Shown here: one piece after another, positions 1 to 45,290 of the stretch
Position numbering within the stretch: the stretch's first letter is position 1
Layout: each line of letters begins with the position of its first letter
Source: Paragordius varius
Lineage: Eukaryota; Animalia; Nematomorpha
Length of the DNA stretch: 64,000 bases
Assembly (NCBI GenBank): GCA_964247055.1
Contig: OZ176056.1
Span: forward strand, 2,108,001-2,172,000
Direction: 5' to 3'
Position numbers and translations under genes: made by a program
The notes under the pieces: model-generated
The model's database searches: none
What the model saw: only the letters and a program-made list of their open reading frames with translations
What the model was told of the DNA's origin: nothing

Positions 1-1
1 T
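1..1 (-). other. ACC: First base of the predicted ATG of a second ACC copy extending left of the window
   Basis: Bases 1-1790 align nearly identically to 33129-34910, and 33129 is the A of the ACC ATG. Confidence 0.75.
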
Positions 2-16947: not shown

Positions 16948-19900
16948 TATCCATTCATCACCGAAGCCCCAATTCAGTAACAAGATAGATAGTGTTTTAG
17001 TTGTTAACGAGTTGAGAATTGATTGAAAACAGATTTTGCCGGACGGTTTATTGTAAAGACTTGGCTAACTTGAGTTTACTGTAAAGAACTAAACAGATTA
17101 AAGTATTATTGTGTACATCCACTCATCACCGAAGCCCCAATTCAGTAACAAGATAGACGGTGTTTTGGTTGTTAACGAGTTGAGAATTGATTGAAAACAG
17201 ATTTTGCCGGACGGTTTATTGTAAAGACTTGGCTAACTTGAGTTTACTGTAAAGGACTAAACAGATTAAGTTATTTTGTGCTTCCACTCATCACCGAACC
17301 CCGCAATCTAGTAACAAGATAAGTTGTTAACGAGTTGAGAATTGATTGAAAACAGATTTTGCCGGACGGTTTATTGTAAAGACTTGGCTAACTTGAGTTT
17401 ACTGTAAAGGACTAAACAGATTAAAGTATTATTGTGTACATCCACTCATCACCGAAGCCCCAATTCAGTAACAAGATAGACGGTGTTTTGGTTGTTAACG
17501 AGTTGAAAATTGATTGAAAACAGATTTTGCCGGACGGTTTATTGTAAAGACTTGGCTAACTTGAGTTTACTGTAAAGGACTAAACAGATTAAAGTATTAT
17601 TGTGTACATCCACTCATCACCGAAGCCCCAATTCAGTAACAAGATAGACGGTGTTTTGGTTGTTAACGAGTTGAGAATTGATTGAAAACAGATTTTGCCG
17701 GACGGTTTATTGTAAAGACTTGGCTAACTTGAGTTTACTGTAAAGGACTAAACAGATTAAAGTATTATTGTGTACATCCACTCATCACTGAAGCCCCAAT
17801 TCAGTAACAAGATAGACGGTTTTTTGGTTGTTAACGAGTTGAGAATTGATTGAAAACAGATTTTGCCGGACGGTTTATTGTAAAGACTTGGCTAACTTGA
17901 GTTTACTGTAAAGGACTAAACAGATTAAAGTATTATTGTGTACATCCACTCATCACCGAAGCCTCAATTCAGTAACAAGATAGACGGTGTTTTGGTTGTT
18001 AACGAGTTGAGAATTGATTGAAAACAGATTTTGCCGGACGGTTTATTGTAAAGACTTGGCTAACTTGAGTTTACTGTAAAGGACTAAACAGATTAAAGTA
18101 TTATTGTGTACATCCACTCATCACCGAAGCCCCAATTCAGTAACAAGATAGACGGTGTTTTGGTTGTTAACGAGTTGAGAATTGTTTGAAAACAGATTTT
18201 GCCGGACGGTTTATTGTAAAGACTTGGCTAACTTGAATTTACTGTTAAGGACTAAACAGATTAAAGTATTATTGTGTACATCCACTCATCACCGAAGCCC
18301 CAATTCAGTAACAAGATAGACGGTGTTTTGGTTGTTAACGAGTTGAGAATTGATTGAAAACAGATTTTGCCGGACGGTTTATTGTGGGCTAACTTGAGTT
18401 TACTGTAAAGAACTAAACAGATTAAAGTATTATTGTGTACATCCACTCATCACCGAAGCCCCGATTCAGTAACAAGATAGACGGTGTTTTGGTTGTGAAC
18501 GAGTTGAGAATTGATTGAAAACAGATTTTGCCGGACGGTTTATTGTAAAGACTTGGCTAACTTGAGTTTACTGTAAAGAACTAAACAGATTAAAGTATTA
18601 TTGTGTACATCCACTCATCACCGAAGCCCCAATTCAGTAACAAGATAGACGGTGTTTTGGTTGTGAACGAGTTGAGAATTGATTGAAAACAGATTTTGCC
18701 GGACGGTTTATTGTAAGATTTGGCTAACTTCATTTTACTGTAAAGGACTAAATAGATTAGTTATTTTTGCATCCACTCATCACCGAAGCCCCAATTCAGT
18801 AACAAGATAGATGGTGTTTTGGTTGTTAACGAGTTGAGAATTGATTGAACACAGATTTTGCCGGACGGTTTATTGTAAAGACTTGGCTAACTTGAGTTTA
18901 CTGTAAAGGACTAAACAGATTAAAATATTATTGTGTACATCCACTCATCACCGAAGCCCCAATTCAGCAACAAGAGAGATGGTGTTTTAGTTGTTAACGA
19001 GTTGAGAATTGATTGAAAACAGATTTTGCCGGACGGTTTATTGTAAGACTTGGCTAACTTGGGTTTACTGTAAAGGACTAAACAGATTAACGTATTAATG
19101 TGTACATCCACTCATCACCGAAGCCCCAATTCGTGTTTTGGTTGTTAACGAGTTGAGAATTGATTGAAAAGAGATTTTGCCGTACGGTTTATTGTAAGAC
19201 TTGGCTAACTTGAGTTTACTGTAAAGGACTAAATAGAGTAGTTATTTTTGCATCCACTCATCACCGAAGCCCCAATTCAGTAACAAGAGATGGAGTTTTA
19301 GTTGTTAACGTGTTGAGAATTGATTGAAAACAGATTTTGACGGACGGTTTATTGTAAGAATTAGCTAACTTGAGTTTACCGTAAAGAACTAAACAGATTA
19401 AAGTATTATTGTGTACATCCACTCATCACCGAAGCCCCAATTCAGTAACAAGATAGATGGTGTTTTAGTTGTTAACGAGTTGAGAATTGATTGAAAATAG
19501 ATTTTGCCGGACGGTTTTTTGTAAGACTTGGCTAACTTGGGTTTACTGTAAAGGATTAAACAGATTAGTTATTTTTGCATCCACTCATCACCGAAGCCCC
19601 AATTCAGTAACAAGATAGACGGAGTTTTAGTTGTTAACGTGTTGAGAATTGATTGAAAACAGATTTTGACGGATGGTTTATTGTAAGATTTGGCTAACTT
19701 AATTTTACTGTAAAGGACTAAATAGATTAGTTATTTTTGCATCCACTCATCACCGAAGCCCCAATTCAGTAACAAGATAGATGGTGTTTTTGTTAACGAG
19801 TTGAGAATTGATTGAAAACAGATTTCGCCGGACAGTTTATTGTAAGAATTAGCTAACTTGAGTTTACCGTAAAGAACTAAACAGATTAAAGTATTATTGT

Positions 19901-22895
19901 GTACATCCACTCATCACCGAAGCCCCAATTCAGTAACAAGATAGATGGTGTTTTAGTTGTTAACGAGTTGAGAATTGATTGAAAATAGATTTTGCCGGAC
20001 GGTTTTTTGTAAGACTTGGCTAACTTGGGTTTACTGTAAAGGATTAAACAGATTAGTTATTTTTGCATCCACTCATCACCGAAGCCCCAATTCAGTAACA
20101 AGATAGATGGAGTTTTAATTGTTAACGTGTTGAGAATTGATTGAAAACAGATTTTGACGGACGGTTTATTGTAAGACTTGGCTTGAGTTTACTGTAAAGG
20201 ACTAAACAGATTAAAGTATTATTGTGTACATCCACTCATCACCGAAGCCCCAATTCAGTAACAAGATAGATGGTGTTTTAGTTGTTAACGAGTTGAGAAT
20301 TGATTGAAAATAGATTTTGCCGGACGGTTTTTTGTAAGACTTGGCTAACTTGGGTTTACTGTAAAGGATTAAACAGATTAGTTATTTTTGCATCCACTCA
20401 TCACCGAAGCCCCAATTCAGTAACAAGATAGACGGAGTTTTAGTTGTTAACGTGTTGAGAATTGATTGAAAACAGATTTTGACGGATGGTTTATTGTAAG
20501 ATTTGGCTAACTTAATTTTACTGTAAAGGACTAAATAGATTAGTTATTTTTGCATCCACTCATCACCGAAGCCCCAATTCAGTAACAAGATAGATGGTGT
20601 TTTTGTTAACGAGTTGAGAATTGATTGAAAACAGATTTCGCCGGACAGTTTATTGTAAGAATTAGCTAACTTGAGTTTACCGTAAAGAACTAAACAGATT
20701 AAAGTATTATTGTGTACATCCACTCATCACCGAAGCCCCAATTCAGTAACAAGATAGATGGTGTTTTAGTTGTTAACGAGTTGAGAATTGATTGAAAATA
20801 GATTTTGCCGGACGGTTTTTTGTAAGACTTGGCTAACTTGGGTTTACTGTAAAGGATTAAACAGATTAGTTATTTTTGCATCCACTCATCACCAAAGCCC
20901 CAATTCAGTAACAAGATAGATGGAGTTTTAGTTGTTAACGTGTTGAGAATTGATTGAAAACAGATTTTGACGGACGGTTTATTGTAAGACTTGGCTTGAG
21001 TTTACTGTAAAGGACTAAACAGATTAAAGTATTATTGTGTACATCCACTCATCACCGAAGCCGCCATTCAGTAACAAGATAGATGATGTTTTGGTTGTTA
21101 ACGAGTTGAGAATTGATTAAAAACAGATTTTGCCGGAGGGTTTATTGTATGACTTGGCTAACTTGAGTTTACTGTAAAGGACTAAACAGATTAAAGTATT
21201 ATTGTGTACATCCACTCATCACCGAAGCCCCAATTCAGTAACAAGATAGATGGTGTTTTTGTTAACGAGTTGAGAATTGATTGAAAACAGATTTCGCCTT
21301 ACAGTTTATTGTAAGAATTAGCTAACTTGAGTTTACCGTAAAGAACTAAACAGATTAAAGTATTATTGTGTACATCCACTCATCACCGAAGCCCCAATTC
21401 AGTAACAAGATAGATGGTGTTTTAGTTGTTAACGAGTTGAGAATTGATTGAAAATAGATTTTGCCGGACGGTTTATTGTAAGACTTGGCTAACTTGGGTT
21501 TACTGTAAAGGATTAAACAGATTAAGTTATTTTGTGCATCCACTCATCACCGCCCCAATTCAGTAACAAGATAGATGGTGTTTTGGTTGTTAACGAGTTG
21601 AGAATTGATTAAACACAGATTTTGCCGGACGGTTTATTGTAAAGATTTGGCTAACTTGAGCTTACTGTAAAGGACTAAACAGATTAAAGTATTATTGTGT
21701 ACATCCACTCATCACCGAAGCCCCAATTCAGTAACAAGATAGACGGTGTTTTGGTTGTTAACGATTTGAGAATTGATTGAAAACAGATTTTGCCGGACGG
21801 TTTATAGACTTGGCTAACTTGAGTTTATTGTAAAGGCCTAAACAGATTAAAGTATTATTGTGTACATCCACTCATCACCGAATCCGCCATTCATTAACAA
21901 GATAGATGGTGTTTTGGTTGTTAACGAATTGAGAATTGATTGAAAACAGATTTTGCCGGACGGTTTATTGTAAGATTTGTATAATTTGAGTTTACTGAAA
22001 GGACTAAACAGATTAACTTTTATTTCTACATTCACTCATCACCGAAGCCCCAATTCAGTGACAAGATAGACGGTGTTTTAGTTATTAACGTGTTGAGAAT
22101 TGATTGAAAACACATTTTGCCGGACGGTTTATTGTAAGATTTGGCTAACTTGAGTTTACTGTAAAAGACTAAACAGATTAAAGTATTATTGTGTACATCC
22201 ACTCATCACCGACGCCCCAATTCAGTAACAAGATAGACGGTGTTTTGGTTGTTAACGAGTTGAGAATTGATTGAAAACACATTTTGCCGGACGGTTTATT
22301 GTAAGACTTGGCTAACTTGAGTTTACTGTGAAGGACTAAACAGATTAAAGTATTAATGTGTACATCCACTCATCACCGAAGCCCCAATTCAGTAACAAGA
22401 TAGACGGTGTTTTGGTTGTTAATGAGTTGAGAATTGATTGAAAACAGATTTTGCCGGACGGTTTATTGTAAGATTTGGCTAACTTGAGTTTACTGTAAAG
22501 GACTAAACAGATTAAAGTATTATTGTGTACATCCACTCATCACCGAAGCCCCAATTCAGTAACAAGATAGACGGTGTTTTGGTTGTTAACGAGTTGAGAA
22601 TTGATTGAAAACAGATTTTGCCGGACGGTTTATTGTAAAGACTTGGCTAACTTGAGTTTACTGTAAAGGACTAAACAGATTAAAGTATTATTGTGTACAT
22701 CCACTCATCACCGAAGCCGCCATTCAGTAACAAGATAGATGGTGTTTTGGTTGTTAACGAGTTCAGAATTGATTGAAAACAGATTTTTCCGGACGCTTTA
22801 TTGTAAGATTTGGCTAACTTGAGTTTACTGTAAAGGACTAAATAGGTTACCGTTTTATTGTTTTTTACCACCACTCATCACCGAACCCACCGATT
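16948..22895. repeat. Satellite array A, 162-168 bp monomers (about 36 copies)
   Basis: Tandem monomer ...catccactcatcaccgaagccccaattcagtaacaagatag...; 168-bp period at 17439-18279; 813-bp five-monomer higher-order repeat at 19416-21042. Confidence 0.98.
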
Positions 22896-23375
22896 TTCAA
22901 AACAAGAAAAGGTTGTAGGGTTTATGTATTCTATTTGTGTGTTATTATTTAAAAAACATTAACTTTAATAAAATGATTGTTGCTTAAATTATATATGCTC
23001 ATGTTTTAAGCATTTTGTACAATAACGAGAAAAGGCTATTTCACAAATATTAATATTACAAACACAACATGGAAAAATTGAAAAATATTTTTTTAAAAGA
23101 CTACTCTACTTATTCATAAATTATAATTCCCATGATTATAAAAATAAGATAATACCAATTTACATCGCTAATCCCCATTTCACAAACCAAAGAGTTTATT
23201 AAAATTTAAAAAAAACAAAAAAAGATATGGTTGTTTTTAATTTTTACATGTTGTCTCTGTAATTTGAAATACTGTAAGTTTCGTTTGAAATAATGCGAAA
23301 ATTGTAAAAATATTACAATTACAACATAAGTATATCGACTTTTTATAAAATAACCAGGTCTCATATTTTTACCAA

Positions 23376-23548
23376 CCAATTTAAGTTTTGATATAAACCG
23401 ACCTCCACAATCTGCTTGCAATTTACTCGTATAAGACAACCTTAAACATCAATCTTGTTACTGAAAAATGGCGACTTTGGTAATCAGTGGATGTGAAACA
23501 CAATAATACGATAATCTGTGTAGACCGTTACAGTAAAATCAAGTTAGA
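23376..23548 (-). repeat. Single inverted, diverged satellite monomer
   Basis: The reverse complement (aacttgattttactgtaacggtctacacagattatcgtattattgtgtttcacatccactgattaccaaagtcgccatttttcagtaacaagattga...) aligns to the satellite monomer. Confidence 0.85.
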
Positions 23549-23946: not shown

Positions 23947-25043
23947 TTAGCAGTGATTCGTTTGAACATAAACACGATGGGAACTTGCTTCTGTGGATAC
24001 GGCATCTTGATCTATAAAGACTGGTCTAACCACAATTTCGTATTCCGTATCGGGCAAAACATATGCGAAGCGATAATTATCAGAAACCGCCTAAAAAAAG
24101 AAATGCACACATTAGTTTTTATACAAATACATAAAATTTTTGGGTCGTACGAATATATATACAAAGAAATACAGTAAAATTAAATTTTATACAGACAGAA
24201 CATCTCTCAAAAAATTTTACAGTAAAAATTGAAATTATAGAGATAACAGTAAAAATATAAAGACATATACTTTTTCAAGATAATCATACTATAAACCACT
24301 TACAGAAATTATTTTATTACAATTGGAAAATAACATAATTAATATATCACTAAATTAGATTTTTATTTCTTACTTTGAAATTCCAAAACTATGAATAATA
24401 TTTAAAAATATGTTTAATAAATTACAGCATACTTTAAAAAAATATTGTCTTTATATTTTCACGTTCATCCGTATAATTTCATGATTTACTGTAAAAAAGG
24501 CAAATTTTATAATATAAATTTAGACAACTAGTTATAAAACGTACTCGTCTGCCTTTATATTATAATTCAAATATGACTCCTGTTAACCACACATACATTG
24601 TCATAAAGACTTATATTTCGTCGTTTAAAACCGAAGATATTTATAGTTTCAGATTTTGGGTAAAAAAGCTTGTCATAAATTTAAAATTATTAAAAATCTA
24701 TCAAAAATATACCGAAATAAATCCTCTTCTAGCAGGTAAATCTTTCCCCGGGCTACTCAAAAAAATGTCTAGGCCACGGATGTCTTTTGCTTTTTCAGGA
24801 TAATTAATTAAGGGGTTGGCAAGAAAAACTAATAAATCTAAAGAATTTGTATTTCCAGCGGTTGTGCCATTTATCAGGGATATGCCTTTTATTTTGACCA
24901 CCCATCTTGACAAATCTATATATAACGTTAAAAAGATGTTTTTAAAAAAATATGCGTAAATTACAAAATTTAATGTATATTACCTTCCTGATTAAGAACA
25001 TATTGTCCCACATTGTTAAGACTAACTACACCATATATCAAAG
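23947..25043 (-). CDS. Orphan spliced reading frame (exons 25043-24984, 24915-24713, 24668-24597, 24090-23947); last exon resembles the C-terminal half of a fibronectin type III domain; 5' end unresolved
   Basis: Four GT-AG-bounded segments join in phase without stops (introns of 68, 44 and 506 nt). The last exon reads AVSDNYRFAYVLPDTEYEIVVRPVFIDQDAVSTEASSHRVYVQTNHC*, resembling the FN3 L.P.T.Y.V.V pattern. Confidence 0.5.
24172..24491. mobile_element. MITE family 1 copy in the 506-nt intron of the orphan gene
   Basis: Forward arms at 24172 and 24220; inverted arm ending actg-ta at 24491. Confidence 0.65.
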
Positions 25044-25419
25044 CTTGTTTAAAATCAATCAAACATCAATCTAATTAAAACCGTTTATACAATAAAATCG
25101 ATGTAAAATTTTGTGAAAACCAAACGTTAACTTTTTAATATTATTATTGCTTTATTTAAAATTATATGACGCGTTCAATTGTTTTTAAAAGATCAGATAA
25201 CTGAGAAACTATTTATTCCAATTACAAATTGAAGTTTTCAGGAATCAGTAAAAGTAAGAAAATGTATAAAATTCCATTTTATATATACTTATAATAAATT
25301 TAATGGCCTTAAATACATAAATTTAAATATAATTAAGCAAATATTTAATACTTTAAATCTTTATTTAATAAAAAAATCCTAAAAATTGATCTTAGGTAAA
25401 ATAAATTAACATATAATAC

Positions 25420-25570
25420 TTGAAATTTTTCAGCAATAAGTTTATCCAACCATTCGGTATCAAAATTATTTTTTTGAAAACTTTCCGTTTCCAACAAAGT
25501 TATAAGGTATTCAACAGTAGTTCTAAAATCACCCTTAATCGATAACTCTTTAAGGCCAACAACCAAATTC
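25420..25570 (-). CDS. ACC: ACC exon 11 ([22 protein letters not shown]...IAEKFQ), last recognisable ACC exon
   Basis: Overlaps ORF 25345..25566; phase matches exon 10; donor gtatta at 25419. Read-through adds 24 aa and stops at 25345. Confidence 0.93.
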
Positions 25571-25907
25571 CTAAATTAATTAAGAATTAAGCGAAACAAA
25601 TTGTAAATTATTCGAAATTAAATTGGAAATGTACTAAATTTGTAAAAAAAATTATTTAATAAATTAAAATTTTTTAAAAATAATACCCGGAAAATGTAAT
25701 TCAAAAATTATATTTAACACCCCAAAATAACATATTTTTTAAAAAAGTTTATGAAAGATTAATATTATTGTCAAACTTTGACTCAAAAATCCGAAATCTA
25801 ATATATGACTAATATATATATATATATATATATATTAATAGAAATAAAGTTCAATAAATATATAGAAAAGTCAACATTATATTTTACAAAAACCAAAAAA
25901 TTTAATT

Positions 25908-25946
<39 letters not shown>

Positions 25947-28900
25947 TACATATAAATGCTAGGTATCACTTTTTTAGATAAACACCCAAAATTTTTGATA
26001 AATTATAACTCCACATTAACTTTTTATATTAAAAAATATAAAAGTATATTAACTATACTATATATACATATCCATTTTCAAAAAAACATTCCAACATTTT
26101 TATGAATTATAACTCTATTATCTGAACATTTTTGTCAAAAGTTTCAAAACTTAAAATATATTTAAAAGATAGAAGTTTTAAAAGTTAAAATAGATTTAAC
26201 GGAATACTGTCGAGCCTCATCACGGTTTTCACCCCATGAAAAGCAATGTCCAAATTGGGAATCGGCAAATTCATGCAAACCGCCCGAAGCTCCAACACTA
26301 AAATATCCCCAAATATTTTTGTTACTCCGGAAATTAAGTTCCTAAAAAAATGTATGTTAGAAAATATTAATTCAATTAAATGATTGAATTAAATTATAAT
26401 GGATATTCAAGGTAAAAATTGGATTTAAAAAAAATCATATAAAAATATATTGTTAATGAGTATTTGTCATTTCTAGATCATAATTCCAGTTTAATTGCAA
26501 ATTTATATTTTTTTATAATACAATACAAAATTTTTAAGTTATTGAGAGTAAAACTCCCTAAACCCAAAATAGATATATTGTTTTAATTCAAAATTTACAT
26601 ATTCTTAACTAAGGTATATATTTACTCTTGTATTATTAAATATTTATACAGATATATTACGTCAAGCTATTGAATTAACTTTTAATTTTTTAAATATTTT
26701 AGCAAAAATAAATCTATTACTATTTAAACCAACGACCCTAGTGCTACGTATTTTTGAGTAAAACGCATGAAATCCCAATATTTTTCATCTGTCATTGTTT
26801 GTTCAAATTATGTTACCAAAAAAACAAAGTTTAAGAAAGAAAAGCTGTCCATTTTATATTTAATTTACTTACAATTTTTCAAAACAACAAATAAAAACTA
26901 ACACAACTTTGAACTTTACAAAACTTATAAAACCCTTAAAATCATATATTTAACAAAAAATTTTCAAATAGCTAGCTCACTTGAATTTGCCCCGATGTTG
27001 GTTTAAAACCTTCGTCAGGATTTTCGCTCGTTATCCTACAAGCTATGACATGTCCCCGGGGTCGCGGTTTATATTGAGAATCTACGCTGGCTGCTGACAA
27101 GATTGAATATCCATCAGTAATGGAATTTAAGCGTTGATTTCGAACCAAAATATTTTCTAGCGGGCCGGAATTAGCATTTTCATTTTCATTAATAAAATTT
27201 TCAGATATTTCAGTTTTTTGACCTGAAATTTGCATTTTATCATTTTGGTTAGTAGGGGGAGTTTCCGTACCAGTTTGTTTTATTATGGCATTTGTATTGG
27301 CTGTTATGGGTACTAAAAACACCATAAAAGATTAATAATGAGGCATTTAAGAATGATTATTTTGAGTGAGCAAATTATATGTTTTCCCTTAATTTTGTAA
27401 ATATAACTCAAACAGTTTCAAGCTATAATCTATATTATTAAAATAAATCTAATTTATAATCCAAAATAAGAGGGATATCTAAAAAAGTATTTTTCTCCAC
27501 ATTTTGATTTATAAAAAATTATTATAAAATTAAATTTATAATTATAAAGCCCTCAAAAATTCCTGATATTTACCGATTTCCAAATAATTGCATTTTTCTA
27601 TCTCAAAAAATTGAAAAATTAAATTTACTTTGAGATAAGGGTGATTCTACCATAAACCACGGAGATAAACCCATATAAACTCGAATATCTTTTATACGGT
27701 AAAGTGGTAAGCCCATCGCGATCTAAAAAAATAAAATTTGATCAAATAATAAATTAAAAGTAATTTAAATTAGAAATTATTTTTAATTTAAAATATTTTT
27801 AAAATAGGAAATTCGATTTAAAATTAATATAATACTGAAAAAATATAGACTATACCATAAGAATATATTTCATATTAATGATGAGTTAAATTAGCCTAAA
27901 ATCATTATTTATTTTAGGGTAAATTTGAATTGTTCGAGAGTGAAATTAAATTGTTCAAGGGTGAATTTGATTTTAAATGGTATATATTTAATTAAAAAAC
28001 CAACAAAAAAATTCGGAAATTATATTACATATTATTTTGAAAAACTATAAAACTTTAGATAAACTCTAAACATTACATATATATACCTGTAATTGACAAG
28101 CCGGTAAATTAATGTCACAAATCATTTCTGTACACGGATGTTCAACTTGAAGTCTAGGATTTAGTTCTAAAAAGCAAAAAGTGCCTTTCGCCGTATCATA
28201 CAAGTATTCAACGGTTCCTGCACTAACGTAGCCTACCATACGAGCTAACCTTACAGCGGCCTACAGATATATAAAAAGAGTTTTTTCCTATTCACATCTC
28301 ATTAAATTTGTTGATTAAATTGTGGACAAAATTTGATTTATTTTATATGCTACTGTGTTACAATTATGTGAATTGGATAACACAAATGTTACTCTATATA
28401 TATATATATATGGTTGCAAATATTTCAGTATAAAAAAAGAGAATATTTATGGTAATTTTAATTTTTCTAAAACAAATGTAGCTACTTCTATGAGCCCAAC
28501 TACAAATTATTAATCGTCCAAATCTAGTTAGGTTGGATAATAAAACTTGCATTATTTTAACAAAAACGAATGATTCTGTAAATTTGGCTGTGAAGATGAA
28601 TACATACATTGATAAGGCAAGTTTTTTAATGTTATAAACTATAATATAAGCTATTATAAAAAGCATCACAAGACTCAGTATTACCTTTTCAGCTCACAAG
28701 AAACTTACACTTTTTGGTGTTTTTTTTAAAAATAATATCATATTGACCAAATATTAGAACATATCTATCATTTAATTTTCAATTTTTAACACAATTTAAT
28801 TACCTAATACCTTTTAATAGTCCCCAAAACCAAAAAGCTCTAAAACTTTAACCTTTTCCATTTCTTCAATCACGTGGGCGGTTGCTATGGTAACGGGTGC

Positions 28901-31900
28901 TTCCTCAATAATCTTTTGATGACGTCTTTGAATGGAACAATCTCGACCAAACAGAGAAATAGCTATTCCATAACTATCAGCCAGCAATTGAACTTCCAAA
29001 TGCCTACAATGGCTAGCCAAGGCCATCAAGAAAATGGGTGATCCTGGGACTTCAGTTTGGACCTTTTAGTAAATAGCATTTATTATTGATAAAATAAAAT
29101 TTAGCTCAAATACGTAATTTTATATTTCGTTTATCACAGTACTTTTTGCAATATGTTTATACTGTGGTATTAATAATTTTCTTCCATTATTAAAAGAAAA
29201 ATTATCGCATTTGAACCATAATTTATTTTTATGCGAAATCGTAATAATAAAATAAAATTGTGTTGAGAAAAAAAAGCTGTATATATACCAATTACAATTC
29301 AAATTCACCCTTTCAATCATTTTCGAACAATTCAAATTCACGTGAAATATGTTTTTTAAGATTAAAAATTACCTATATTTGTATATATTTTTAACAATTA
29401 AAAATTTTGTTTAATACTGAAAAAATAACAAATTATGCCATAAAAAAATTTTCATATTAATAATGAGTTATATTAATTGAAAAACACAAAATTTATTTTC
29501 AGAGTGAATATGAATTGTTCAGGATGAATTTGAACTGTTGACATGTATAGAGGCAACTTAATTGATGTTGCACAATAAAGAATAGAGATGTAAATTATTA
29601 ACACAATTAATAACATAATTGGTAAAAATATAAATGTTATAATCACCACAATTTTCAATTCCTTGATAAACAAATCAATTTCCTTATTTTAAGTCGATTA
29701 TATTGAACCAAATTTTTAGTTAATAAATTTCCATAGTGATAATAAAAATATAATTTATCAATAACTGTTTTTATATAACCTATTTTACGGACATGGACAT
29801 AATTCTTTGAAACAAATAAGGTAAATTTAATAAATTTATAATTTTAAAAATTTTTTTAAAAAAAATTGATACCTGTTTAAAAAAAATAAAAATTAATACC
29901 TGTTTAAAAGCTATTGGAAAATCTTCTGGTTTTAATACTTTACGTATCCCTTTACCTCCACCACCTTCAGAAGCTTTAATCATAATGGGATATCCAATTT
30001 TTTTGCTCATCTGAAAAAAAATTTTGTTCAAAATATAAAAATATTAATTATATTTTTACCAAAATTATATATTTATGTAAAAATTTTATATGGCAGGAAT
30101 AAAAAGAATATAATATTTTTTAATATATTGTTTTGAATAGCAATACAAATAATTTAGAATTTGTCTCAATTATGCAAGGTATAAAGCTAAAATCAAAAAT
30201 AAACATAAATGGTTTCTTTACAAAAATATAATATCCTTCATTTGTTTTTAACCAACATAACTCATAAATACATATATACATATGTATCAATTTCACTAAA
30301 TTTTTTACAATTAAACCTTCAAAAAACTAATAAAATTTTAATTAAAAAACTCTAAAACACCCTTAAAAACCCAAAAAACTCGAAAATGTTTCTAACTTGT
30401 AATCCTTGTTCACAGTTTGAAATACAAGCCGATTCATAAATTTCAGTTGGAATTAGGTTATTCAAATTATCCAAATCATAATAGGTTGTAGCGTTTTGCG
30501 ACGCTGAGGTAGAAACACTATTTCCTACATTGGTTATTTGTTTGGTTGTTGAAACAGTAATACTTTTTGCCATGAGGGATTGATTAACAAAATGTTCGGC
30601 ATTTATACTTTGTTGTAGGGAGCGACTTTTGACCTCTAAATTTTCAATCTCTATGCCTGCATTTAAGTTTCAATAATAAAATTATTTCAATTAAAAAACG
30701 GATAAAATGTGAAAAAAATAAAATTCTTTTTAAAAGATTGCTATTCCTTATCCCACATAAACTGAATTAAAATTTAAAATTATGTAATTGAGTTAAATAT
30801 TTATATATCCATTTTTGAAACCAAAACAATAAGTTAAATTAAAAAAATCAAGATACAATAATATGGGTCTTTGATTCTTTTAGATTTTATGTTTTTTCTG
30901 TATAATTTGAATTTTTACTGTAAATTAACTAAAAAACGGTAATAAATTTTTATTTTTACATAATCTCAATATGATAATATATAATTTTACTAGTATTTGC
31001 TTAAGGTTTATAACATAAATATAATTTAAGAATTTGCTTTTTTAAAAAATGCATTATATTACGGTATGACAAAAGGGTTTTTTAATATTCCGGTACAACT
31101 AAAAAATTTAGAGCGATATAAGTCTTATAATAAGTTGCAACATTAAAATTATAAAATATCACTATAATTTATTTCAATACAACAATATTTTTACCATTCA
31201 ACCATATATTGGTTCTTACCTTAAAATTATTATGTGCACAATATCATATATATTTATAATTCAAAGCAGATTTGGAAAGTATGTAGCTTATGGTCTAATT
31301 CTTTAATTGATGAATCATTTAAAATTATTAATTGATTTAACTAATCCCCATCAAATCAAAATAGAAACGCGCCCAAACTTATACAAATAGCCATAAAACA
31401 AAAAGTATTTGTTGGAAATAAACCTCCTCTTTAAATTCCAAATAAATCATTCGCTTATATATTAAATTTCTTAGAAAAAAAAAACTCACAAAACCGTTTA
31501 AACCCTTCGGTATTTCTAACCTTGTTGAAAAACTCCCCTTTAAATTCTTATAATCATTACCTTATATATTCAATTTCTGCGCCAAAAAACTCACAAAACC
31601 GTTTCAACCCTTCGGTATTTCTAACCTTTAAAACCACCCATCAAAAAACTTCAACACAAATTATTCGCTTATATATTCAATTTCTTAGCCAAAAAATTCC
31701 AAAACCATTTACAACCTTCGGTATTTTTAACCGTTAAACCACATTTCAAACCTTTAAATTCTAATATCATATTCAATTCTTAACCAAACCAAAACTCACA
31801 ATAACCGTTACAATAATAAAAATTAATAAAAATTCCTCAAAACTTAAAAAGTTTAGAAACCACAAAACCTCAACAAATTTTTTACGTTTAAACCTGATCC

Positions 31901-33129
31901 ACTCCAGGCTAGGGTAGGAACATGCGCGCTTTGTGCAATCAGGGTGGATGCTATTTTATCACCCAGGGCATGCATAGCAAATGCCGATGGGCCCAAGAAA
32001 GCCAGGCAGCGGTCCGCTAAAGCAAAGGGCAGGGCCGGATTTTCACTGGCATGACCCCAACCGGCCCAAACTGCATCCGCCCCGGTCCGAACACAAATCT
32101 CTACAATGAGTTCAACGTTGGCGTAATTGTGATTGTTGGAACCGCCTGGAACCGGGACATATTGATCCGCCATTTTTATGTACTCTATTAATTTTAAAGG
32201 AAATGAATATATATGGATGAAAGGAAGATATATTTTAATATTTGAAAACTAAGAGATGATATATACTTTATAATTATATATATATAATTATTTAATAGGA
32301 TAACCTTCCCCATAAAAACCCCGGAAGTGGGAAAAATAGATAATTTATTTACGCATCAATCATGCTTTTTTAAAGAATATGTTAAAGTTAAATTGTGAAA
32401 TTTAAAATTTAATTTTTTGTATGATATAAAAAAATATTAATTTATAAATTTAAAATAATATAAATTGAATGGTGAATCAGAGTGTTTTATAATATCCACA
32501 AACCAATTCGGGAAGAGGTTCACTTTTAAACGATTATATTAGGGTTTAATTTAAATTAAAGAGTTCATGAAAAACAGCAAAAGTTAATTATTTTATAGGC
32601 GTTTTTTAGAAAATCTTATATATGAGGTGATTAAAGGGGGTACATTTTTATTGGAAAATCGAAAATTAAATTACGTCAATAAATTAATTTTTGATTTAAA
32701 TTTTCATTTCGAAACTTATGTTCTATAAAAAAAGTAAACTATGGAAAAACAAGCCGAATTTAATTAATCAACAGTCAAAATAAAAAAAAGTAATTTTAAT
32801 ATAATTGTTTTTGCTTATAATGACGTATATTTTACCAGCATTAGCTTTTAAATCTTCGGGAGTCACCATGACAACAAATTTTATCGCTCGTTCGTTTCGA
32901 AACATTTCGTATGCCCATCTTCGAATAGATCGCATACATTTAACCGCAGCTATACCATTGTTGGCAATAAGGATCTAAATTTAAACGTTATAAAAATTAC
33001 CTTTTGAATTAGAGTGGTTCCTCCAAATTTTATAACAAATTCTTCGGGATTGGATAGCGTAAGCGAACCATGTTTTGAAGTACTTATATTATTAATTGAT
33101 GTATCCAAAACACTAATATCGGATGACAT
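25420..33129 (-). CDS. ACC: Acetyl-CoA carboxylase, animal type; 11 exons encoding only the N-terminal biotin carboxylase domain (675 codons); downstream ACC exons absent
   Basis: Manual splicing at GT-AG sites gives one continuous frame. It contains [153 protein letters not shown] and [19 protein letters not shown]. Exon phases are all consistent. Confidence 0.95.
25812..25942. repeat. Two (AT)n microsatellites in ACC intron 10
   Basis: (AT)n runs near 25812-25834 and 25915-25942; similar runs at about 1846-1867, 28396-28410 and 42795-42811. Confidence 0.8.
26208..26341 (-). CDS. ACC: ACC exon 10 ([16 protein letters not shown]...GENRDEAR)
   Basis: [18 protein letters not shown] motif; phase-2 donor gtattc. 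Confidence 0.95.
26981..27312 (-). CDS. ACC: ACC exon 9 (N/T/E-rich insert plus [27 protein letters not shown])
   Basis: Overlaps ORF 26972..27325; the phase-1 tttttag acceptor matches exon 8; gtgagc donor. Confidence 0.88.
27629..27722 (-). CDS. ACC: ACC exon 8 ([31 protein letters not shown])
   Basis: Conserved [13 protein letters not shown]; ttttag acceptor; phase-1 donor gtaaat. Confidence 0.9.
27780..27975. mobile_element. Partial MITE family 3 copy in ACC intron 7
   Basis: Internal region and right arm (agggtaaatttgaattgttc, aagggtgaatttga) match 45100-45290. Confidence 0.6.
28087..28260 (-). CDS. ACC: ACC exon 7 ([21 protein letters not shown]...PACQLQ)
   Basis: [13 protein letters not shown] motif; ctgtag acceptor; gtatat donor; 174 nt. 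Not in the ORF track. Confidence 0.95.
28853..29062 (-). CDS. ACC: ACC exon 6 ([13 protein letters not shown]...EEMEK)
   Basis: Overlaps ORF 28814..29029; [17 protein letters not shown]; AAG acceptor; 210 nt. Confidence 0.94.
29295..29537. mobile_element. MITE family 3 copy in ACC intron 5
   Basis: caattcaaattcaccc ... gaatttgaactg inverted termini; internal sequence similar to 45040-45220. Confidence 0.7.
29900..30010 (-). CDS. ACC: ACC exon 5 ([25 protein letters not shown]...AFKQ)
   Basis: ATP-grasp glycine loop; ttttcag acceptor; gtatta donor; 111 nt. Confidence 0.95.
30397..30656 (-). CDS. ACC: ACC exon 4 (S/T/N-rich insert plus [19 protein letters not shown])
   Basis: Overlaps ORF 30352..30573 with an open upstream extension; aaatgcag acceptor in phase 1; gttaga donor. 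The exact 5' boundary is less certain. Confidence 0.8.
31440..31815. repeat. About 105-bp degenerate minisatellite (about 3.5 copies) in ACC intron 3
   Basis: ttatatattcaatttct...aaaactcacaaaaccgttt.aacccttcggtattt.taacc recurs near 31451, 31560, 31665 and 31767. Confidence 0.75.
31894..32184 (-). CDS. ACC: ACC exon 3 ([15 protein letters not shown]...TLAWSGSG)
   Basis: Overlaps ORF 31853..32173; taatag acceptor; the phase-1 donor fits exon 4. An alternative donor 8 nt further on is possible. Confidence 0.92.
32836..32974 (-). CDS. ACC: ACC exon 2 ([12 protein letters not shown]...PEDLKANA)
   Basis: Follows a 26-nt GT-AG intron; highly conserved BC N-terminus; phase-1 donor gtaaaa. Confidence 0.95.
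33001..33129 (-). CDS. ACC: ACC exon 1 ([43 protein letters not shown])
   Basis: ATG at 33129-33127; [10 protein letters not shown] matches the conserved ACC start motif; GT donor at 33000. Confidence 0.88.
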
Positions 33130-35707
33130 AAAATTTGATTATAATAATTTAAAGCAAAAAAACACGCGTTTTTACGTGATTGTATGATATTGAAGCTGTG
33201 CCAATTTATTATACGAGAACAAGGATACTATTGTTCAGCTCAAAATTAATTTTGTAGGTCCTTACTTATGATTTATTTATAAAGTATGGCAAATACTTTA
33301 CTGTTGCAAAATACTAGCCAAATAAAAACTAAAAAAAAATAATATTATAAATTCAAGATAAAAAAAGAGTTTATAAATTAGTTTAGAATATGTTTGGTAA
33401 TTATGATTTGTGCTTAATATTTCGCGATTACATATAGGGTGATTATTGATCGAGAGTGCTCCCAATGGTATCCAAATCTTAAGACACGTATTCTATGGCT
33501 TTGGTGCAGTGTGCGAAAATATATTTAAAACTGTATGATTTAAAAAAATTTACTTAACCTATTTTTTTGGTGTATATTTTAGAAAAAAACTAAAATTCTT
33601 TATATTTTTCCATTTTAACACTTTATATCCTTTTGAGGTAGTGTTAATCATAAAAATATTTTAAGCGTTAGGCTAAATTTAATGATATGCTGTTTTAGCC
33701 TCTTAGTATGATAAAATAAGGTAAAAATGCCTGTAAACTTTTTTCCTTAATATTTTTATATCGCAAATACAACAGGCAAATAAATGTATCATTATGAAAA
33801 AGCTTTCGGATTATAGAAATTTTTGATATTTATCTAATATCAGCTACTTGCTTCAATCATGTTTTGGAGTTAAGAATTAAAAATGTTAACTGTAAAAATT
33901 ATAAATATTTTTATCTAGAAGACATATTGAAAAACAATTTTCAGTCAAATTGATTTTGAAACAGTTATTTTACGAAAATCTGTGGATTAGAAAACCCCCT
34001 CAACATGCCATCTCGTACAGATAATGTAATAAATTGTTGACCATTTATTTAGTTTTGGAGTGAGTCTTTGGTTTTAAGTGGGAAATTAAGAGTTAAGAAA
34101 CTAGAATTTATAAAATATAACACTTATCTAATAAATTTAAATTAATTTTTATTTTATGGTTCTGACGTACAAATACCCCAAAATGTTTCATCTATTCCAC
34201 GTGCATAAAATAAAAGAAATGTTTATTCATTGAGGTAACATTTATAGAACAGCGGTTTATATATCAAAGGATATAGTTTGAAAAAATAAAAAGATAAAAG
34301 GGGAGTTAAATGGCTAAACTAAAATTATGTAATATAGGCATTTAAAAATAATTTATCAAATTTCAAACGTAAAAACAATTGTATCCCGTTTTTTCCAATA
34401 GGGTAGATGTACATGTAGATATATTGTTTTAAACTTTAATTTTTATAAGATTTTGTGAGCAAATGTTTGCCAATTATGATTTTCCTAATATTTCGCAGGT
34501 CGCACGTGAGGTCTTGGAGGGCCGCCTATTGGATAAATCTGGCTTGAATCAATTTTTTTCGAAGCATGTTATGCGCCGTTTTGAGATGTATTTATAATTA
34601 TATATTTTTTCAGAAGCAATGCAGTTTCTGTTTTAAATTGTATTTTACAGGTTATATCTATTATTAACTATAAGTTACTAAACGATTAGTCTGCTTTATT
34701 TTTCCCTTCAATTTTCGAAATAAAAAAAATCAAATTTATTTATTGGATAAACAACTTTGTGAATAGTTTTGCTACAATATATAATCTATAGTATTCATAT
34801 GGGAAATCTTCCAAAAATATTATATATTCAATAACAAATTAATTATTCAGCGCTGGCTTTAGATTTCCAATGGCTTCTTCCAAAACTTCTAAAATTATGA
34901 ATTAAATATAACATGAGCTAATATATATTGATAGTTTTGCTGCATGTTATCTATATTTATCTATATATATACCTTTTGATATATCAGGATCCTCTAAGCC
35001 TAATGCATCTAGAATTATATAGTTTATTTGGTTAAAGTGGAAAGTGTAGTAAATAACAAATAAGATAATGTATTGAGTATTGTCAAATATTTTTTATATC
35101 TTAGGATGTATACTGTAAATAAAACTTCATTGTCAATTTATACCGAGGATTTCAAATTTTTAGTTCTTAATTATTTGGAGTTTTTTATGCGTGACAGGAT
35201 TATCAATTTGCTTATATTACAATCGATAATAAATAATAAATTACTTTCAACTCCTTGTGGAAACATGGCGCCTATATCATTTAGAAAAATATATAAAGTT
35301 ATGCCATATAACCAACTATTTGATATATTTAAATTAACAATATTTTAATAAAAAAAATTATTTAATTAAGTATTGTCAAGTTTTTTGATAAATTTTTTTC
35401 CTGCATTTTATTTAACAATTAATAAAAATTATAATATAAAAATTAATTACTTTCAGTTGCTTTGTCGATTAAATCTAATTTAAGGTAACATAATTATGAA
35501 AAAATGAAGCCCGCTATATATAAGGATCCTTTGTTGTTAAATGGATAAAAAGAATATCTTTAAAAATTGAATTTTGGTTTTTATAAATTAAGACCAAATA
35601 TTTAAAGTATTTTTATTGAAAACACTCATTTTGGATTTATATAGCATGGATGTTCTTTCAAATTAAAACTATAAATATCCCTATATTGTGATTAACTTTT
35701 AGATATA

Positions 35708-35920
35708 CAGTAAAAATTGGATTATACAGACTAAATGTAATTTCAAAATACAACCATACTTTTTATACCTTTATTTTTCTTATATAAAATATTTACTACC
35801 CATAAAATATAAAATTGATTGTTTTTTCAATATTCATCAGATGACTTAAAAATAAGATTTGATAGTTGTCTTTTAGAAAAAAATGTCTACGTTTTGTCCG
35901 TGTACTTCCAATTTTTAATG
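35708..35920. mobile_element. MITE family 1 copy, specific to copy B
   Basis: ta-cagtaaaaattggattatacagac... with inverted ...ttttgtccgtgtacttccaatttttaatg-ta; no counterpart near 2650 in copy A. Confidence 0.7.
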
Positions 35921-38900
35921 TATTAGTAAAAAACTGATAAATAATAAAATGCTATAAAAAATTAATTAAATTATTATAAATTTATTTTAATCCTAAATAA
36001 ATTTTTTTTGGGAAGTTGTTGCGTTTGTTAAAAAGATAATCTTTATGTCACCTTGAATAGTGTCCATCATATCTATATAAATATTGTTTAAAGCCAAAAA
36101 TATTATTTTCATATATTAAAGTCTGCAATAAAATTAGACATGCAAAAAATATACTGCTAATGCGCTCTTTCAAGGCTAAATTTGATATATATAATTTATT
36201 GATTTGTGAAATTTTTTAATTTTTAGTATTATAAAGCATACATTTTATGGATATTTTCATTCCATCTATGAAATAATTTATATAAATATTAACAAAACAC
36301 AAAGAGGTAATCTACCTAAAAATCTCTCTCAAATATAAAAGAGTACTTGAAAAGTACATGTCATTTTTTTTCAAAATATTCAACAATTTTAATCCTATAT
36401 GTGCGGTTAGAAAATCAGCGTGTCTCTGAAACCTAAATGGCTTAAATAAACATATTTTAAAAACCGGCAGTTTTAATAATTATTAGAATTTATTGTTATT
36501 AATAATTTAGGTGATTTTAAACTAATGTCGTCAATTAATACACAATAATTATTTTGAGCATTATATAAATTTCTTAACTTATCACAAAATTTATCCCAAT
36601 GTGGACTCTTATAGTAATCTTTACATACAATTATTTTTTTTATTACACCAATGTTTAATTAATTATTAAAAATTACCAATTTTGGCCCGATCTATATTAA
36701 ATTTAATGATTTAATTATAATTTTATAAATTATATTGCCATAAAAATTACTTATATTTTCTGGACCTAATCACGAAATAAAAAATTTTAATAATTTTTAT
36801 AATGAAAACTATATATAAAAATATTTTACTAATATTCCGCGTTTCCTCCAAAAAGTTTTTTGAATCTAAATATATATAGGGATAATTTAAATTAAAGATA
36901 TTTAAAAAATAAAATTAAAATTGCTGCAAAATGTAAAATAAAACATAAATAGAATTACGATTAACTAAAATGTATTGAAGATTATAATGTAACGCAAAGC
37001 TATTTTGATTTAAAAATAAAAGGTCATTGATTAAATATAAATCAATATATATGCCAAAAATTTAAAAATTTGATGGTATTAAAAACTTTATTAGAGTCTT
37101 CAGACTCCTTGGGAAAATACAATAAAATCAAAAAAAAAAATTTTTTTAAGTTTTTCCGTATTAAATCACATAATTTTATATACCATTTTATAACCAAATG
37201 CAACTAATTATAGCCATAGGAAAATAAAAATGTTTGTTTTAGTTAAAAATGTTGCGTTTGGTAAAATGTTACTTTTGACTAAAAATCATATAATTATAAT
37301 TAGACGGGCTATTTGGAAATCAAATTAAATTTTATGAAAATATATCAGCTGCCATAAAGTAATTTTAAAAACCTTATTGGAATCTTTATAAATTATTATA
37401 ACATTCGTTAAGATATAAGATTTAAGCTTTTTCGATTTTTATGTTTTGAAATTTTTGTTATTACAAATATAGTAAAATTTTAAAACGTTCTACATTTTAA
37501 AAGAGTCAAAACACAAAACATTTGTTTCTCTTGGTTACTTGCGTTTATTTATCTATAGAGCACTGGCCTCTCATTAGAATTTAAGGGAATTTGAAAGTCC
37601 ATCGCAGTGGTATTTCCTTATAAATTTTAACAGGCTGTATAAAAGCACTTTTAGGGCCGCGGTTTTAATTAATCTATTGGCTTTATACAAAAACCTAATT
37701 AAAAGCGTACAAGGGGTAGAAATTCACAAACTACGCCAATTAAAAAGAGTGGAAAAATATGAATACTGACCTGATTTATTAAAATGCTATGTTTTAAATC
37801 GTTACGATGAATTATATATTTAATTTTTACAAATACTTTTTGATCATTTCAATTCATTAAAGCTAATGAATAAATTATACATTAACTTCACACTTTTTAT
37901 ATCATCATTTTTCCAATAAATTTTAATTTATAACAGCTGAATTTTGGTTTATATTTTATAAAACGTATTTTTTGAAAAGTCAGTAACCATCTAAGAGAAC
38001 GGTTCCAATGTTAAAAACCGGTATTAAAAGTTATACTGTAAGCCAGGTCTTCCAAATTTTAAGAGATATGCTGTTTATTTTAAATTTTTACAACCCGATT
38101 GTGATTATAAACGAGCAGAAACCATTGAAATTTTGGTTCCACTTTTTTTTGACTTGGTTTTCCGGGCGTTAGTTTTCATGTTTTGTCCTTATAATTTTAA
38201 TTTTTATCAATATAGATTCTAAGTAAGACATATACCTTCCATAAGATTGGATCCTTCTGCAGAGGTAAAATAAATATATTCAATACATCAGTAAATTACT
38301 AAGTACCTGTATTCAAATTTTCGACATCTGAAATATATGGTTTATATCATTAAAATCATAACGATATATGTGCAAAAATGATTTTCAAAAATTGCTCAAT
38401 TATCTTTAAAAGATGTGTTTTATAAAAATATTTAATATATAAGAAATTTAGAATTGAAAAACATACGCTCCAATATTTGTCGGCCTATAAAATTAAAGTG
38501 AAATAAAATTCTTTTTTTTTGAAAAAAATTAAATAATATATTTTTTTCGAATTGTACCTTGAACGATTCTGTCATGACTAGTTTTAAATCTTTTGCCTTA
38601 TGTAAAATATTATAAAAAGTATACTTGGTCGAAGTTCTAATTGATATAGAAACGAATTATAAATTGTTAATTTAACCTTAATCGTATTTAGGTCAAATTT
38701 ATCCAATCTATAATAAATTTTGATAGCGGTATTTTATGTGTTTATTTAAAGTAATAAAAAGTTTTTTGGTTACCCTTTTTTCAGAAAAAATATTTTTTTT
38801 TAACTTAATGCTAAATTAAATGAAATTTACAATCACAAATGACTTTATAAAATTAATTAATTCACTTATGTTCTTTAAGTGCTGATTACCCAATTTTATT

Positions 38901-41900
38901 TTTTGAAATTAATAAATTAAAGATTTAATATGTTATAAAAAATGAAGTCTAGATTACTTATAAATATGAAAAAATCCCTCTATTTAAACAATTTTTTTAT
39001 TATTTCAAAAAATATCGGCTTTTGAAATATAAATATTTCTTTTTTGCATTAAAATGTAAGTTATACCGCTTATATCATCCTCACCTACATCATAGTCTAA
39101 ATTTAGGGAAATATATATATATGTATACTCCATCAGAACTGGAATCAACAAAAAATATGTGGAGTCTTAAGAACTAACTTAATTTCGGCCTTAAAATTTG
39201 AATATTGTCAACTGACCTTAAGTTTATGCATTAATCTTTACAAGGATAATATAAATTAGCCAAATTTATAAAATAATATAATATTTCGTGATTATTCTTA
39301 AACTTTTATGTAAATTATGGTTTTTTATTGTCATACATCTTTTTAAAGATGTCTATTTTGATTGCATATTAATTAAAAGGTTAAAAAAATTTTCATCAGT
39401 TTTTTTGGAGACCTATTTTTATAATTTGGTTTCATGTTATGTGATATGGACTCATACATTTCATAATTGAAATAATATTTAGCCTACCTAGGGTTAAACT
39501 GCTCATATGTGTAAAAAATTTGGTAGCAAAATATATATGTATTAAAAAAGTTGGCTTTTTTAAATTATTTTAATAAATTACAAATCATTAATTAACGTAA
39601 TATTAATAATTAATACGCTTGCAAATTTAACTAAAAATACATGTTAAATATAATTGTACATCCACCATATCATATGATATTTTTGAATATTCACGGCTTA
39701 GGTCATATAAACTAAAATAGTTTCGTATAAAAATCTACTTCTTTGAAGACCGGATGGTCCCGGTTGGGGTTCTGTGGCCTCTGTTTAAAATATAATTGGA
39801 AAAAATTAATATGTATTTCATAAAAATAGTTTTAGTCCCGTAAAATATAAAAAGCTTAGAGCATTTATAAAAAATTAAAACCAGATGAGCTTTGTGGGGT
39901 AATTTCAGATATGGCATTATCAGAAACTAAAAAGAAAATGAATAATTTTTAGTTCAAAATTATATAAATCGCAATTGATTTATTATATTATTTCCCTTCC
40001 TTAATATTAGTCTTAAACTTGTATGGACAATAATTGATAATGTATAAATAGATAGAGCCGAATTAAAAAATACCTTCAGTTGATGGTGGATTTACACTGG
40101 GCCCTGATAAAAATTATATATTTGCTTTTAGTTAAAAATTAGGTTTTTTAATTTTTGAACATAAACCGCCAAAGATACTTAGGTTAGGGTATAATACAGT
40201 CAAAAAAGTAAAAATTGTTTTTAAAAATAACGGTATTTGAACAAATTTTAAAATTTGTTAATTACTTTGTCACCAAAAATTAACACTAACTTGTCATTAC
40301 CTGGTTCTAACTGAGCCAATTCGCCTCCATCATCTAGATTTTTAGATTTATTTTTAATCATATCAATTTATAAAAATTTCCAAAATAGGTTTTAATTGGT
40401 TTCAAATAGTTTAGCGAAGCAAATATTTCAATTAAATAATTTTATACAATTTGCAATGTGTTTAATTACTTATTGTAATATTGAAAAACCAGAAATTACA
40501 AAACAAAAAGTTATTTTTATATAAAACTATTAAATTATTTTTTATAAAAATATTTGTGTAACATAAATTGACATCATCAATATTGGAATTAAAATTGCTT
40601 TTTTTGGTAGATTATAATTATTTAGATAAATCACTAATACTTATCCCATAATTTATCAATTAAACTTTTTATTTTTTTAAAAAAATATAATTACCAATAT
40701 TCGCAATTGTTTCAACCAATTTAGCAGCTTCACTGATTTCAACTATTTTATAATAAAATAAAATTTAGAAAAAAACCAAATAAAACAAAATTTTTGATAA
40801 TATATGGTTAATTTTTATCATAACATATAATTTTTAGGGTCATTGAATTATATACCTCCATCTACGACATTTTTATTTGTAAAAATATATTTGAGTTTTA
40901 CCTGTGAGTACAGTAGCTAATGTTTAAAAATATTTATTATAAATTACATTTTTATATAATTTAAAAATAATAGAAATTATATCATTGAAGTGACCGTTTT
41001 TTAACAAAGGAATTAGTAAAAAAATTTATTTAATTAAAATACTAAAATAAAGTTGCAAATTCATACAAAAATTAAATCACAAGGCTAAAATTTATGTTTT
41101 TATGTTTATATTAGGTGAATAACTTATCCAAACTATACTAGTAATTAAATAAATTATGTTAAAATTTCATATATTTTATCAATTACCTTTTCAATTTCAT
41201 GTAAAAAAATGTGCTAAAATTATTTTTTAAAAAATCAGAAAGCTCAATTTCCTATTTTTATATTAGAGTCTTGGCTTTAAATAACTAGTTGTTAGGTTTT
41301 TGGGGACCTCATAAAGAGCAAAAAGCAATAAACTCAAATAAAATATAATCATTTTAAAACAAATTTATAGTTCTTGCAAATGTAATTTTCTTTATTCCTT
41401 AACGAATTTCTCGGTATGGTAATGTTGTCGGTTTAGAACGTATATACTGTTAATATACAAGTTTAAATGGGGTAACTTTGAATGCAACTCAAAGAAAAGT
41501 AATGATTGGACAGAAACAATATTTTCATATTTTCCTTTTATAAAAAAAAGATTATAGGCAATAATTTTGAATTAATATAGGGAGAGTTAGGATCAAATAT
41601 ATACGCTAAATATATTCATACAAGCCAATATAATAAATTCATATCTTAAAAAGGTCAAATCAGTTAGCCTCTTTGAAACAAAACACGTTCTTTATTGTTG
41701 CAAGAATATGCTTTATACGGACAAAACGTATAGAAAAAGATTTGTCACAAAGTCATACATTCTTTTGCCTTGATTTTTACCCGCATTTTAATTTATTAAG
41801 TTTTTTTACAATTTAAATTTCGATTTATCATTTTATAAACGACAAAAGGCTGAGTTAATTTTATAAAAAGTCATGATTTTAAGAAAGAGTTGTCTTTTAT

Positions 41901-44900: not shown

Positions 44901-44957
44901 GAATCAAAAAATCGGCGGGCCGCATTCGAAGTATATATAAGCTAAATATAGCATTTA

Positions 44958-45290
44958 CAGTTCAAATTCACCCTTGAACAATTCACCCTTGAACAATTCA
45001 CCCTTGTATAATATAAATTCACCCTCGAAGAATTCAAATTCACCCTAAAATAAATTGTATTTTTTAAGATTAAAAATTACCTTTAAAAATATTTTTAAAA
45101 TATCAAATTCCGTTTAAAATTAATATAATGCTGAAATAATAATCTATGTCGTAAAAATATATTTCATATCAATGATGAATTATATCATTCCGAAAACACA
45201 TAATTTATGTTTAGGGTGAAGGTGAATTGCTTAGGGTGAATTTGAGTGGTTCGACGGCGAATTTGAATTGCTCAAAGTTAAATATGAATT
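44958..45290. mobile_element. MITE family 3 (end cagttcaaattcacc with aattcaccct subterminal repeats)
   Basis: Repeated aattcaccct(tgaac) at the left and agggtgaatt at the right; inserted within the hAT-like element of copy B; relatives in ACC introns. Confidence 0.7.

Follow-up and report, generated by a model that had tools for sequence, protein, structure and literature searches.

In eukaryotes, acetyl-CoA carboxylase (ACC) is one long polypeptide whose biotin carboxylase (BC) domains must dimerise for activity, and soraphen acts at the interface between them. Recombinant BC-domain constructs of human ACC2 and yeast ACC (PDB 2hjw, 3jrw, and 1w96) have served in crystallography and in studies of soraphen, and eukaryotic BC domains taken out of the full enzyme are mostly inactive monomers. 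Bacterial AccC is a BC-only polypeptide and works with separate biotin carboxyl carrier protein (BCCP) and carboxyltransferase (CT) subunits. Here we describe, in a 64,000-nucleotide (nt) stretch of the genome of the hairworm Paragordius varius (contig OZ176056.1; hereafter the window, numbered from its first letter), a minus-strand copy of the ACC gene that encodes the BC domain only. The copy is of the same BC type as human ACC1 and ACC2 (PDB 6g2i, 2hjw, and 3gid), its exon 3 matching with an E value of 8e-41, versus 1e-6 for bacterial BC. It has almost the same extent as the recombinant constructs, exon 11 ending at residue 555 of the 573 residues of the 2hjw construct, but those constructs are laboratory truncations, whereas the truncation of the copy is genomic and amplified. 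From animal multidomain ACC it differs by its stop at ACC1 residue 622, by two low-complexity insertions, and by a predicted foreign tail of 47 amino acids (aa). With AccC it shares the same three Pfam domains, although it is far closer to eukaryotic ACC.

The locus also resembles the general class of chimeric genes created at tandem segmental-duplication junctions, in which likewise a 5' part with its promoter is joined to a 3' terminal exon with a poly(A) signal. Unlike tandem-junction chimeras in general, however, the unit is amplified many times with a satellite, and the part that was kept is exactly one canonical catalytic domain. A genomically encoded, amplified, and constrained BC-only ACC was not described in the literature that we searched for truncated or tandem BC domains. 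As to structure, we conclude with high confidence that the locus is a truncated 5' fragment of ACC, with its own 5' flank and a foreign terminal exon, which was amplified together with satellite DNA.

Rebuilding the gene model of the BC-only copy gave 11 exons on the minus strand, from 33129 to 25420, with 2025 nt, 675 codons, and 0 stops, and so reproduced exactly the intact model, ending at the BC boundary, of the initial annotation. All introns are GT..AG, down to an intron 1 of 26 nt (33000-32975). Exon 1 (33001-33129, with the ATG at 33129-33127 and 43 codons) aligned to residues 101-120 of the ACC1-like sequence P0132. Exon 2 (32836-32974) starts Biotin_carb_N (PF00289, positions 5-39), with 43 of 46 residues identical to P0132, and exon 3 (31886-32184), the one with the PDB match to human ACC2 quoted above, holds the remainder of that domain (positions 41-110). 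Exon 4 (30397-30648) gave no Pfam match and is ACC-like in its last ~19 codons only, by local alignment to P0132 residues 281-299. The ATP-grasp domain (PF02786) follows in exon 5 (29900-30010; positions 34-67, the glycine-rich loop), exon 6 (28853-29062; positions 89-141), and exon 7 (28087-28260; positions 144-199, the catalytic core), while exon 8 (27629-27722) was placed by its splice sites and a tblastn match to ACC residues 464-485. Biotin_carb_C (PF02785) is opened by the 3' ~30 codons of exon 9 (26981-27312), as seen by Pfam and tblastn, and continues through exon 10 (26208-26341; positions 23-64; 90.7% identical to P0132) to its end in exon 11 (25420-25570; positions 71-107 of 108; PDB ACC1 residues 573-622).

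Two exons are less firmly delimited. The 5' ~65 codons of exon 4 are without homology support and its acceptor is weak (37% pyrimidine), with an in-frame alternative at 30633; in exon 9, a low-complexity insertion that lacks homology takes up the 5' ~80 codons, and in-frame alternative acceptors lie at 27222, 27093, and 27081. Because of these alternatives, 675 aa is only one of several open models, and the real protein may be shorter. Since the standard code gives a clean reading of the exons, ciliate or other alternative genetic codes were rejected, the long open reading frames obtained with table 6 being satellite. A processed (retro) pseudogene was likewise rejected, since ten GT-AG introns are kept. 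Exon 3 stands apart in composition, with 53% GC and a GC content at third codon positions (GC3) of 0.48, versus 30-43% GC and a GC3 of 0.16-0.36 in the other exons; this richness could have been left by conversion from an ACC gene of higher GC content.

Exon by exon, Pfam covered positions 5-110 of Biotin_carb_N, 34-199 of CPSase_L_D2, and 2-107 of the 108 positions of Biotin_carb_C; positions 1-33 of the ATP-grasp profile, which fall to exon 4, were undetected by Pfam. The glycine-rich loop and the catalytic-core motifs are intact in the translation, and the three Pfam domains together with these conserved motifs place the copy in the biotin carboxylase/ATP-grasp superfamily. It is 74% identical to vertebrate-type ACC over 504 aligned residues. 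Local pairwise alignment was used to place each exon on an alignment that comprised 55 full-length ACCs. Of the columns conserved there at >=95%, the copy keeps 107 of 108, and of those conserved at 80-95% it keeps 77 of 83; bona fide ACCs in the same alignment miss 0 to 3 of the 108 near-invariant columns. The best PDB relatives of the exons were human ACC2 and ACC1, bacterial AccC chains reaching only an E value of ~1e-6. A bacterial-type stand-alone AccC was rejected on this difference (~1e-6 versus 1e-40 for eukaryotic ACC) and because no partner genes lie in the window.

The end of exon 11 corresponds to residue 622 of the 2346 residues of human ACC1, near the end of the crystallised BC constructs. 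A tblastn search with nine full-length ACCs (2232-2686 aa, drawn from an exhaustive database search) on both strands of the 64-kb window at E<=1 matched the exons of the copy alone, with no match past about residue 622. BT, BCCP (with the biotin site), central, and CT exons were thus found nowhere in the window, in agreement with the initial annotation, which had seen no BT, BCCP, or CT exons downstream of the copy; its further suggestion of one half of a split ACC meets with no BCCP or CT partner in the window. Since no BCCP or CT domain was found, the copy is best described as a fragment or derivative of an ACC gene and not as an ACC enzyme (EC 6.4.1.2). A word search with exon 3 and the exhaustive search reached a best identity of 64-71%, and the collections held neither a copy from the worm's own genome nor one from a close relative. 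The named short ACC-like proteins in the databases (294-745 aa) turned out to be partial predictions from ticks, vertebrates, algae, and plants, and not BC-only families.

Exon 11 ends at an intact phase-0 donor, CAA/GTATTA, at 25419. The initial annotation had let the protein end either by read-through, which adds 24 codons up to a stop at 25347-25345 and gives 699 aa, or by splicing to the AG at 25071, which adds IDV and a stop. A candidate terminal exon on the minus strand (23947-24090), with 47 codons at 24090-23950 and a TAA at 23949-23947, provides a likelier 3' end. It is of phase 0 and in frame with exon 11, from which it lies 1.33 kb downstream, so that the intron would measure 1329 nt, like intron 3. 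Its acceptor consists of a T run followed by AG (YAG) with 74% pyrimidine, and an AATAAA stands past the stop, at 23908-23903. Of all the AGs from 25400 to 23700, a simple filter for acceptors retained only two: that of the terminal exon, which is the only strong one before the stop, and another beyond the stop. The exon is also a GC island (42%, versus ~22% in its surroundings). The product of exons 1-11 and the terminal exon would likely be a 722-aa chimera of BC and tail. Searches with the tail exon returned no Pfam family at E values up to 10 and no PDB match; an atlas search gave a weak fn3 lead (a rank-3 cluster with fn3 in 11% of its members, score 0.89), and by eye the tail has a pattern like strands F and G of FN3, which we take as a lead only. 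Nor did Pfam match the other open stretches in the interval from exon 11 to the satellite.

The intact donor after exon 11 raised the alternative of a giant ACC gene, in which BC cassettes with their own promoters would each splice across tens to hundreds of kb to BT-BCCP-CT exons shared at the distal end of the array. A conserved 5' flank common to the copies would fit such an arrangement as well. However, the strong in-frame acceptor with its stop and AATAAA at 1.33 kb would capture the transcript, a 6-kb satellite, a 15-kb spacer, and the promoter of the next copy lie in between, and tblastn found no later ACC exon within 25 kb. We therefore regard a giant gene as improbable.

The initial annotation had presented the copy as a lone paralog. 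Instead, window positions 1-23281 match 33129-62868, revealing a head-to-tail repeat unit of ~33-40 kb that holds the gene fragment, and in this correspondence window position 1 is the A of the ATG of the present copy. The left-hand unit contributes a spacer at 1-15258, homologous to the spacer at 33129-47649, which lies upstream of the copy and includes its 5' flank, where identity to the left unit is 97-100% for ~1.6 kb. Downstream of the gene, a 167/168-bp satellite with a 329-bp higher order occupies 16949-22885 in 36 copies, and 82 copies of the same satellite fill 48930-62479 in the next unit upstream. The end of the unit lies at 22886-23281, the homology to the right-hand unit ceasing at 23281, equivalent to 62868. 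Satellite arrays, of 35-36% GC, flank every unit, in a window that is otherwise AT-rich (22-25% GC outside the two satellite blocks); a published hairworm genome has 26.9% GC (10.1101/2023.06.26.546503). The head-to-tail arrangement, the defined boundaries, and the multiple copies found in reads identify a tandem segmental duplication. The BC-only copy is thus one unit of a tandem segmental-duplication array, composed of a gene fragment, a ~15-kb spacer, and a 167-bp satellite, and the array as a whole reaches beyond the window.

Identity between the units is mosaic, at 97-100% over the 1.6 kb upstream of the ATG and over 4637-6235 and at 58-85% in many other blocks. In the spacer, adjacent units aligned over 13.6 kb and differed there by 7.3% substitutions and by 2.0% indel events per site. 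The non-coding DNA of the unit is old and much diverged, and yet the exon frame and the conserved residues are fully preserved.

DNA reads bear on the number of copies and on the assembly. Run X1 matched the copy without a difference, at a depth of ~207-236 (about single-copy), along parts of introns 4, 5, and 9 that measure 331-441 nt; the private unitigs without differences are 371 nt long in intron 4 and 441 nt in intron 9 and stand at ~215-236. Just past exon 11 the rough depth rose to 3092 (24635-24835) and 2415 (25011-25194), that is, to ~11-14 times the private depth, which indicates many such truncated copies. Summed depth was 3000-9000 in exon-containing bins versus 480-1900 in intron-only bins, and we read this as an array of many copies whose exons are >=80% alike while most introns are not. 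As unitigs private to this copy stand at single-copy depth, we infer that its introns share no 31-mer with other copies and thus diverge from them by at least ~3%. In run X5, which carries a second organism label and belongs to a second study, the stretch after exon 11 was present with 0-2 differences per ~250 nt.

These reads also address an assembly artefact, in which a collapse or mis-join in satellite-rich DNA would have removed the remaining ACC exons, as the initial annotation had cautioned. Satellites and near-identical units are indeed hard to assemble. Nevertheless, DNA contigs agree fully with the copy-private stretches and do so at single-copy depth, X1 contains the stretch past exon 11 ~11-14 times over, and the same stretch is found in the run of the second study. 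Since it is multi-copy in reads and nearly unchanged in X5, a one-off misassembly is very unlikely, and we hold an artefact of any such kind to be highly improbable.

We then considered what keeps the frame of the exons open. When AT-biased neutral substitution was simulated on the coding sequence, the probability of no new stop was 25% at 1% divergence, 6% at 2%, 0.7% at 4%, and 0 at >=6%, and the indel rate of the spacer would add many frameshifts. Evolution of the exons at the average rate of the spacer is thus excluded, and, because neutral drift at that rate would have wrecked the frame, it is held either by selection or by gene conversion. The case for selection rests on three observations, namely, private introns beside canonical exons, differences between copies that are mostly synonymous, and open insertion segments. 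Of the exonic differences between copies that were displayed (5, with 290 rows hidden), 4 were synonymous and 1 was an Ile/Thr exchange at a variable residue, and the one displayed indel was an in-frame ATT at 27124, a pattern that is suggestive of constraint. In addition, the two insertion segments without homology in exons 4 and 9 are open. Open runs of such length are uncommon in the introns, where those of >=80 codons account for just 3.5% of codons and those of >=65 codons for 6.1%.

The same observations have to be weighed against non-functional duplication debris, in which a macrosatellite-like amplification would carry the exons as passengers and the frame would stem from recent copying or conversion from a full-length ACC on the chromosome. 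The mosaic of 97-100% blocks beside 58-85% blocks between neighbouring units fits this explanation, as do the satellite context and the lack of a transcript of the copy in two RNA(?) runs (see below); moreover, a terminal exon would be in frame by chance in 1 case out of 3. It is harder to reconcile with introns 4 and 9, which are private at single-copy depth while the exons are open and canonical, since conversion tracts would need to be limited to exons, with the largely synonymous differences displayed, or with two open insertion segments where long open intron stretches are rare. The initial annotation had listed a young non-functional fragment among its options; "young" is hard to square with a unit whose divergence is old and mosaic, while "non-functional" lives on in the debris explanation, which we consider possible, if somewhat doubtful.

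Expression was looked for in X10 and X12, two RNA(?) runs labelled as the same species. Both contained an ACC transcript that is ~83% identical and GC-rich and that matches exons 6, 9, 10, and 11 (compared at window positions 25474-28960). Almost all differences between this transcript and the exons are synonymous: among the 17 shown, 14 fell at third codon positions and only 1 surely changes a residue. The transcript leaves no room for the insertion of exon 9, and at the corresponding places the X1 and X5 DNA contigs did not show its letters. It may come from a separate ACC gene or from RNA of another organism in the samples, and the result for X10 and X12 is neither silence of the array nor support for its expression.

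Several points weigh against a selected and expressed product. No contig of this copy or its family was found at >=90% likeness in X10 and X12. The blocks of 97-100% identity between neighbouring units point to recent homogenisation; if a functional full-length ACC served as donor in conversion, the exons could stay intact even with no selection acting on the truncated product. The count of synonymous and nonsynonymous differences comes from 5 sites picked by display and is thus a matter of small numbers. All runs were available as contigs only, so that depth is rough and copy number can be gauged only roughly from summed contig depth; the read comparison covered a 6-kb stretch, with the terminal exon outside it. 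Finally, the tail amounts to at most half a domain, for which FN3 is a candidate identity only.

Taking both sides together, we tentatively favor, with slightly less than even confidence, an amplified gene for a constrained BC::tail protein that would be non-catalytic on its own and whose expression we predict. A rearrangement cut the ACC gene after exon 11, leaving a foreign terminal exon 1.33 kb downstream. The unit would be transcribed from its own conserved 5' flank, and splicing of exon 11 to the terminal exon would give a protein of ~722 aa or less, made of the BC domain and the 47-aa tail. Without BCCP and CT, such a protein could not make malonyl-CoA. Since eukaryotic ACC needs BC-BC dimers, the protein would most likely act by binding to full-length ACC at its BC domain, either as an inhibitor or as a partner without catalytic activity, and purifying selection would keep the copies open. 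The heterodimerising regulator and the inhibitor decoy suggested by the initial annotation are hypothetical roles. That the array of this parasite encodes a family of BC-only ACC::tail proteins, amplified and under purifying selection, which act through the BC interface as partners or inhibitors of full-length ACC and are dosed by copy number, is a wider proposal that we judge rather unlikely.

Other features of the window concern the spacers and the repeats. The blocks of 97-100% identity at 4637-6235 and 6767-7200 match 37,9xx-39,5xx and 40,2xx-40,5xx in spacer that is otherwise 58-85% identical, and they could stem from recent conversion or else mark a conserved element; open stretches within these conserved blocks gave no Pfam match. 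Each ACC copy is preceded, at a distance of about 1.3 kb and on the other strand, by a conserved GC island with a 44-codon open frame and no Pfam match (1311-1500 and 34431-34620, plus strand), which could belong to the promoter region or represent an exon of a divergently oriented gene. A lone satellite monomer at 23383-23547 has the opposite orientation to the arrays. Just past 62868, a weak remnant of a hAT-transposase dimerisation domain (PF05699, E 0.016) was found on the minus strand at 62920-63180 and 63636-63764. A very high-copy interspersed repeat occurs in intron 7 (27684-28081), in intron 5 (29276-29673), and at 45063-45295. Its summed contig depth of ~1e6, versus ~220 for single-copy sequence, corresponds to thousands of copies; the intron 5 and 7 copies are partly inverted, and the reads show many rearranged joints. 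Intron 3 contains a tandem repeat of ~109 bp at 31420-31813, in three to four copies with 73-77% identity. Rfam gave no match in the whole window.

The adult stage of this animal is reported to live off stored lipid. Were the BC-only copies silent, the locus would be an example of satellite-adjacent tandem arrays that hold gene fragments intact, and it would serve as a warning for annotation, since each unit looks like a good gene. If they are expressed, they would provide a natural test of regulation through the BC interface in an animal with a lipid-dependent adult, and, if the action proposed here is true, they would represent a dominant-negative or regulatory form, evolved in nature, of an enzyme central to lipid metabolism.

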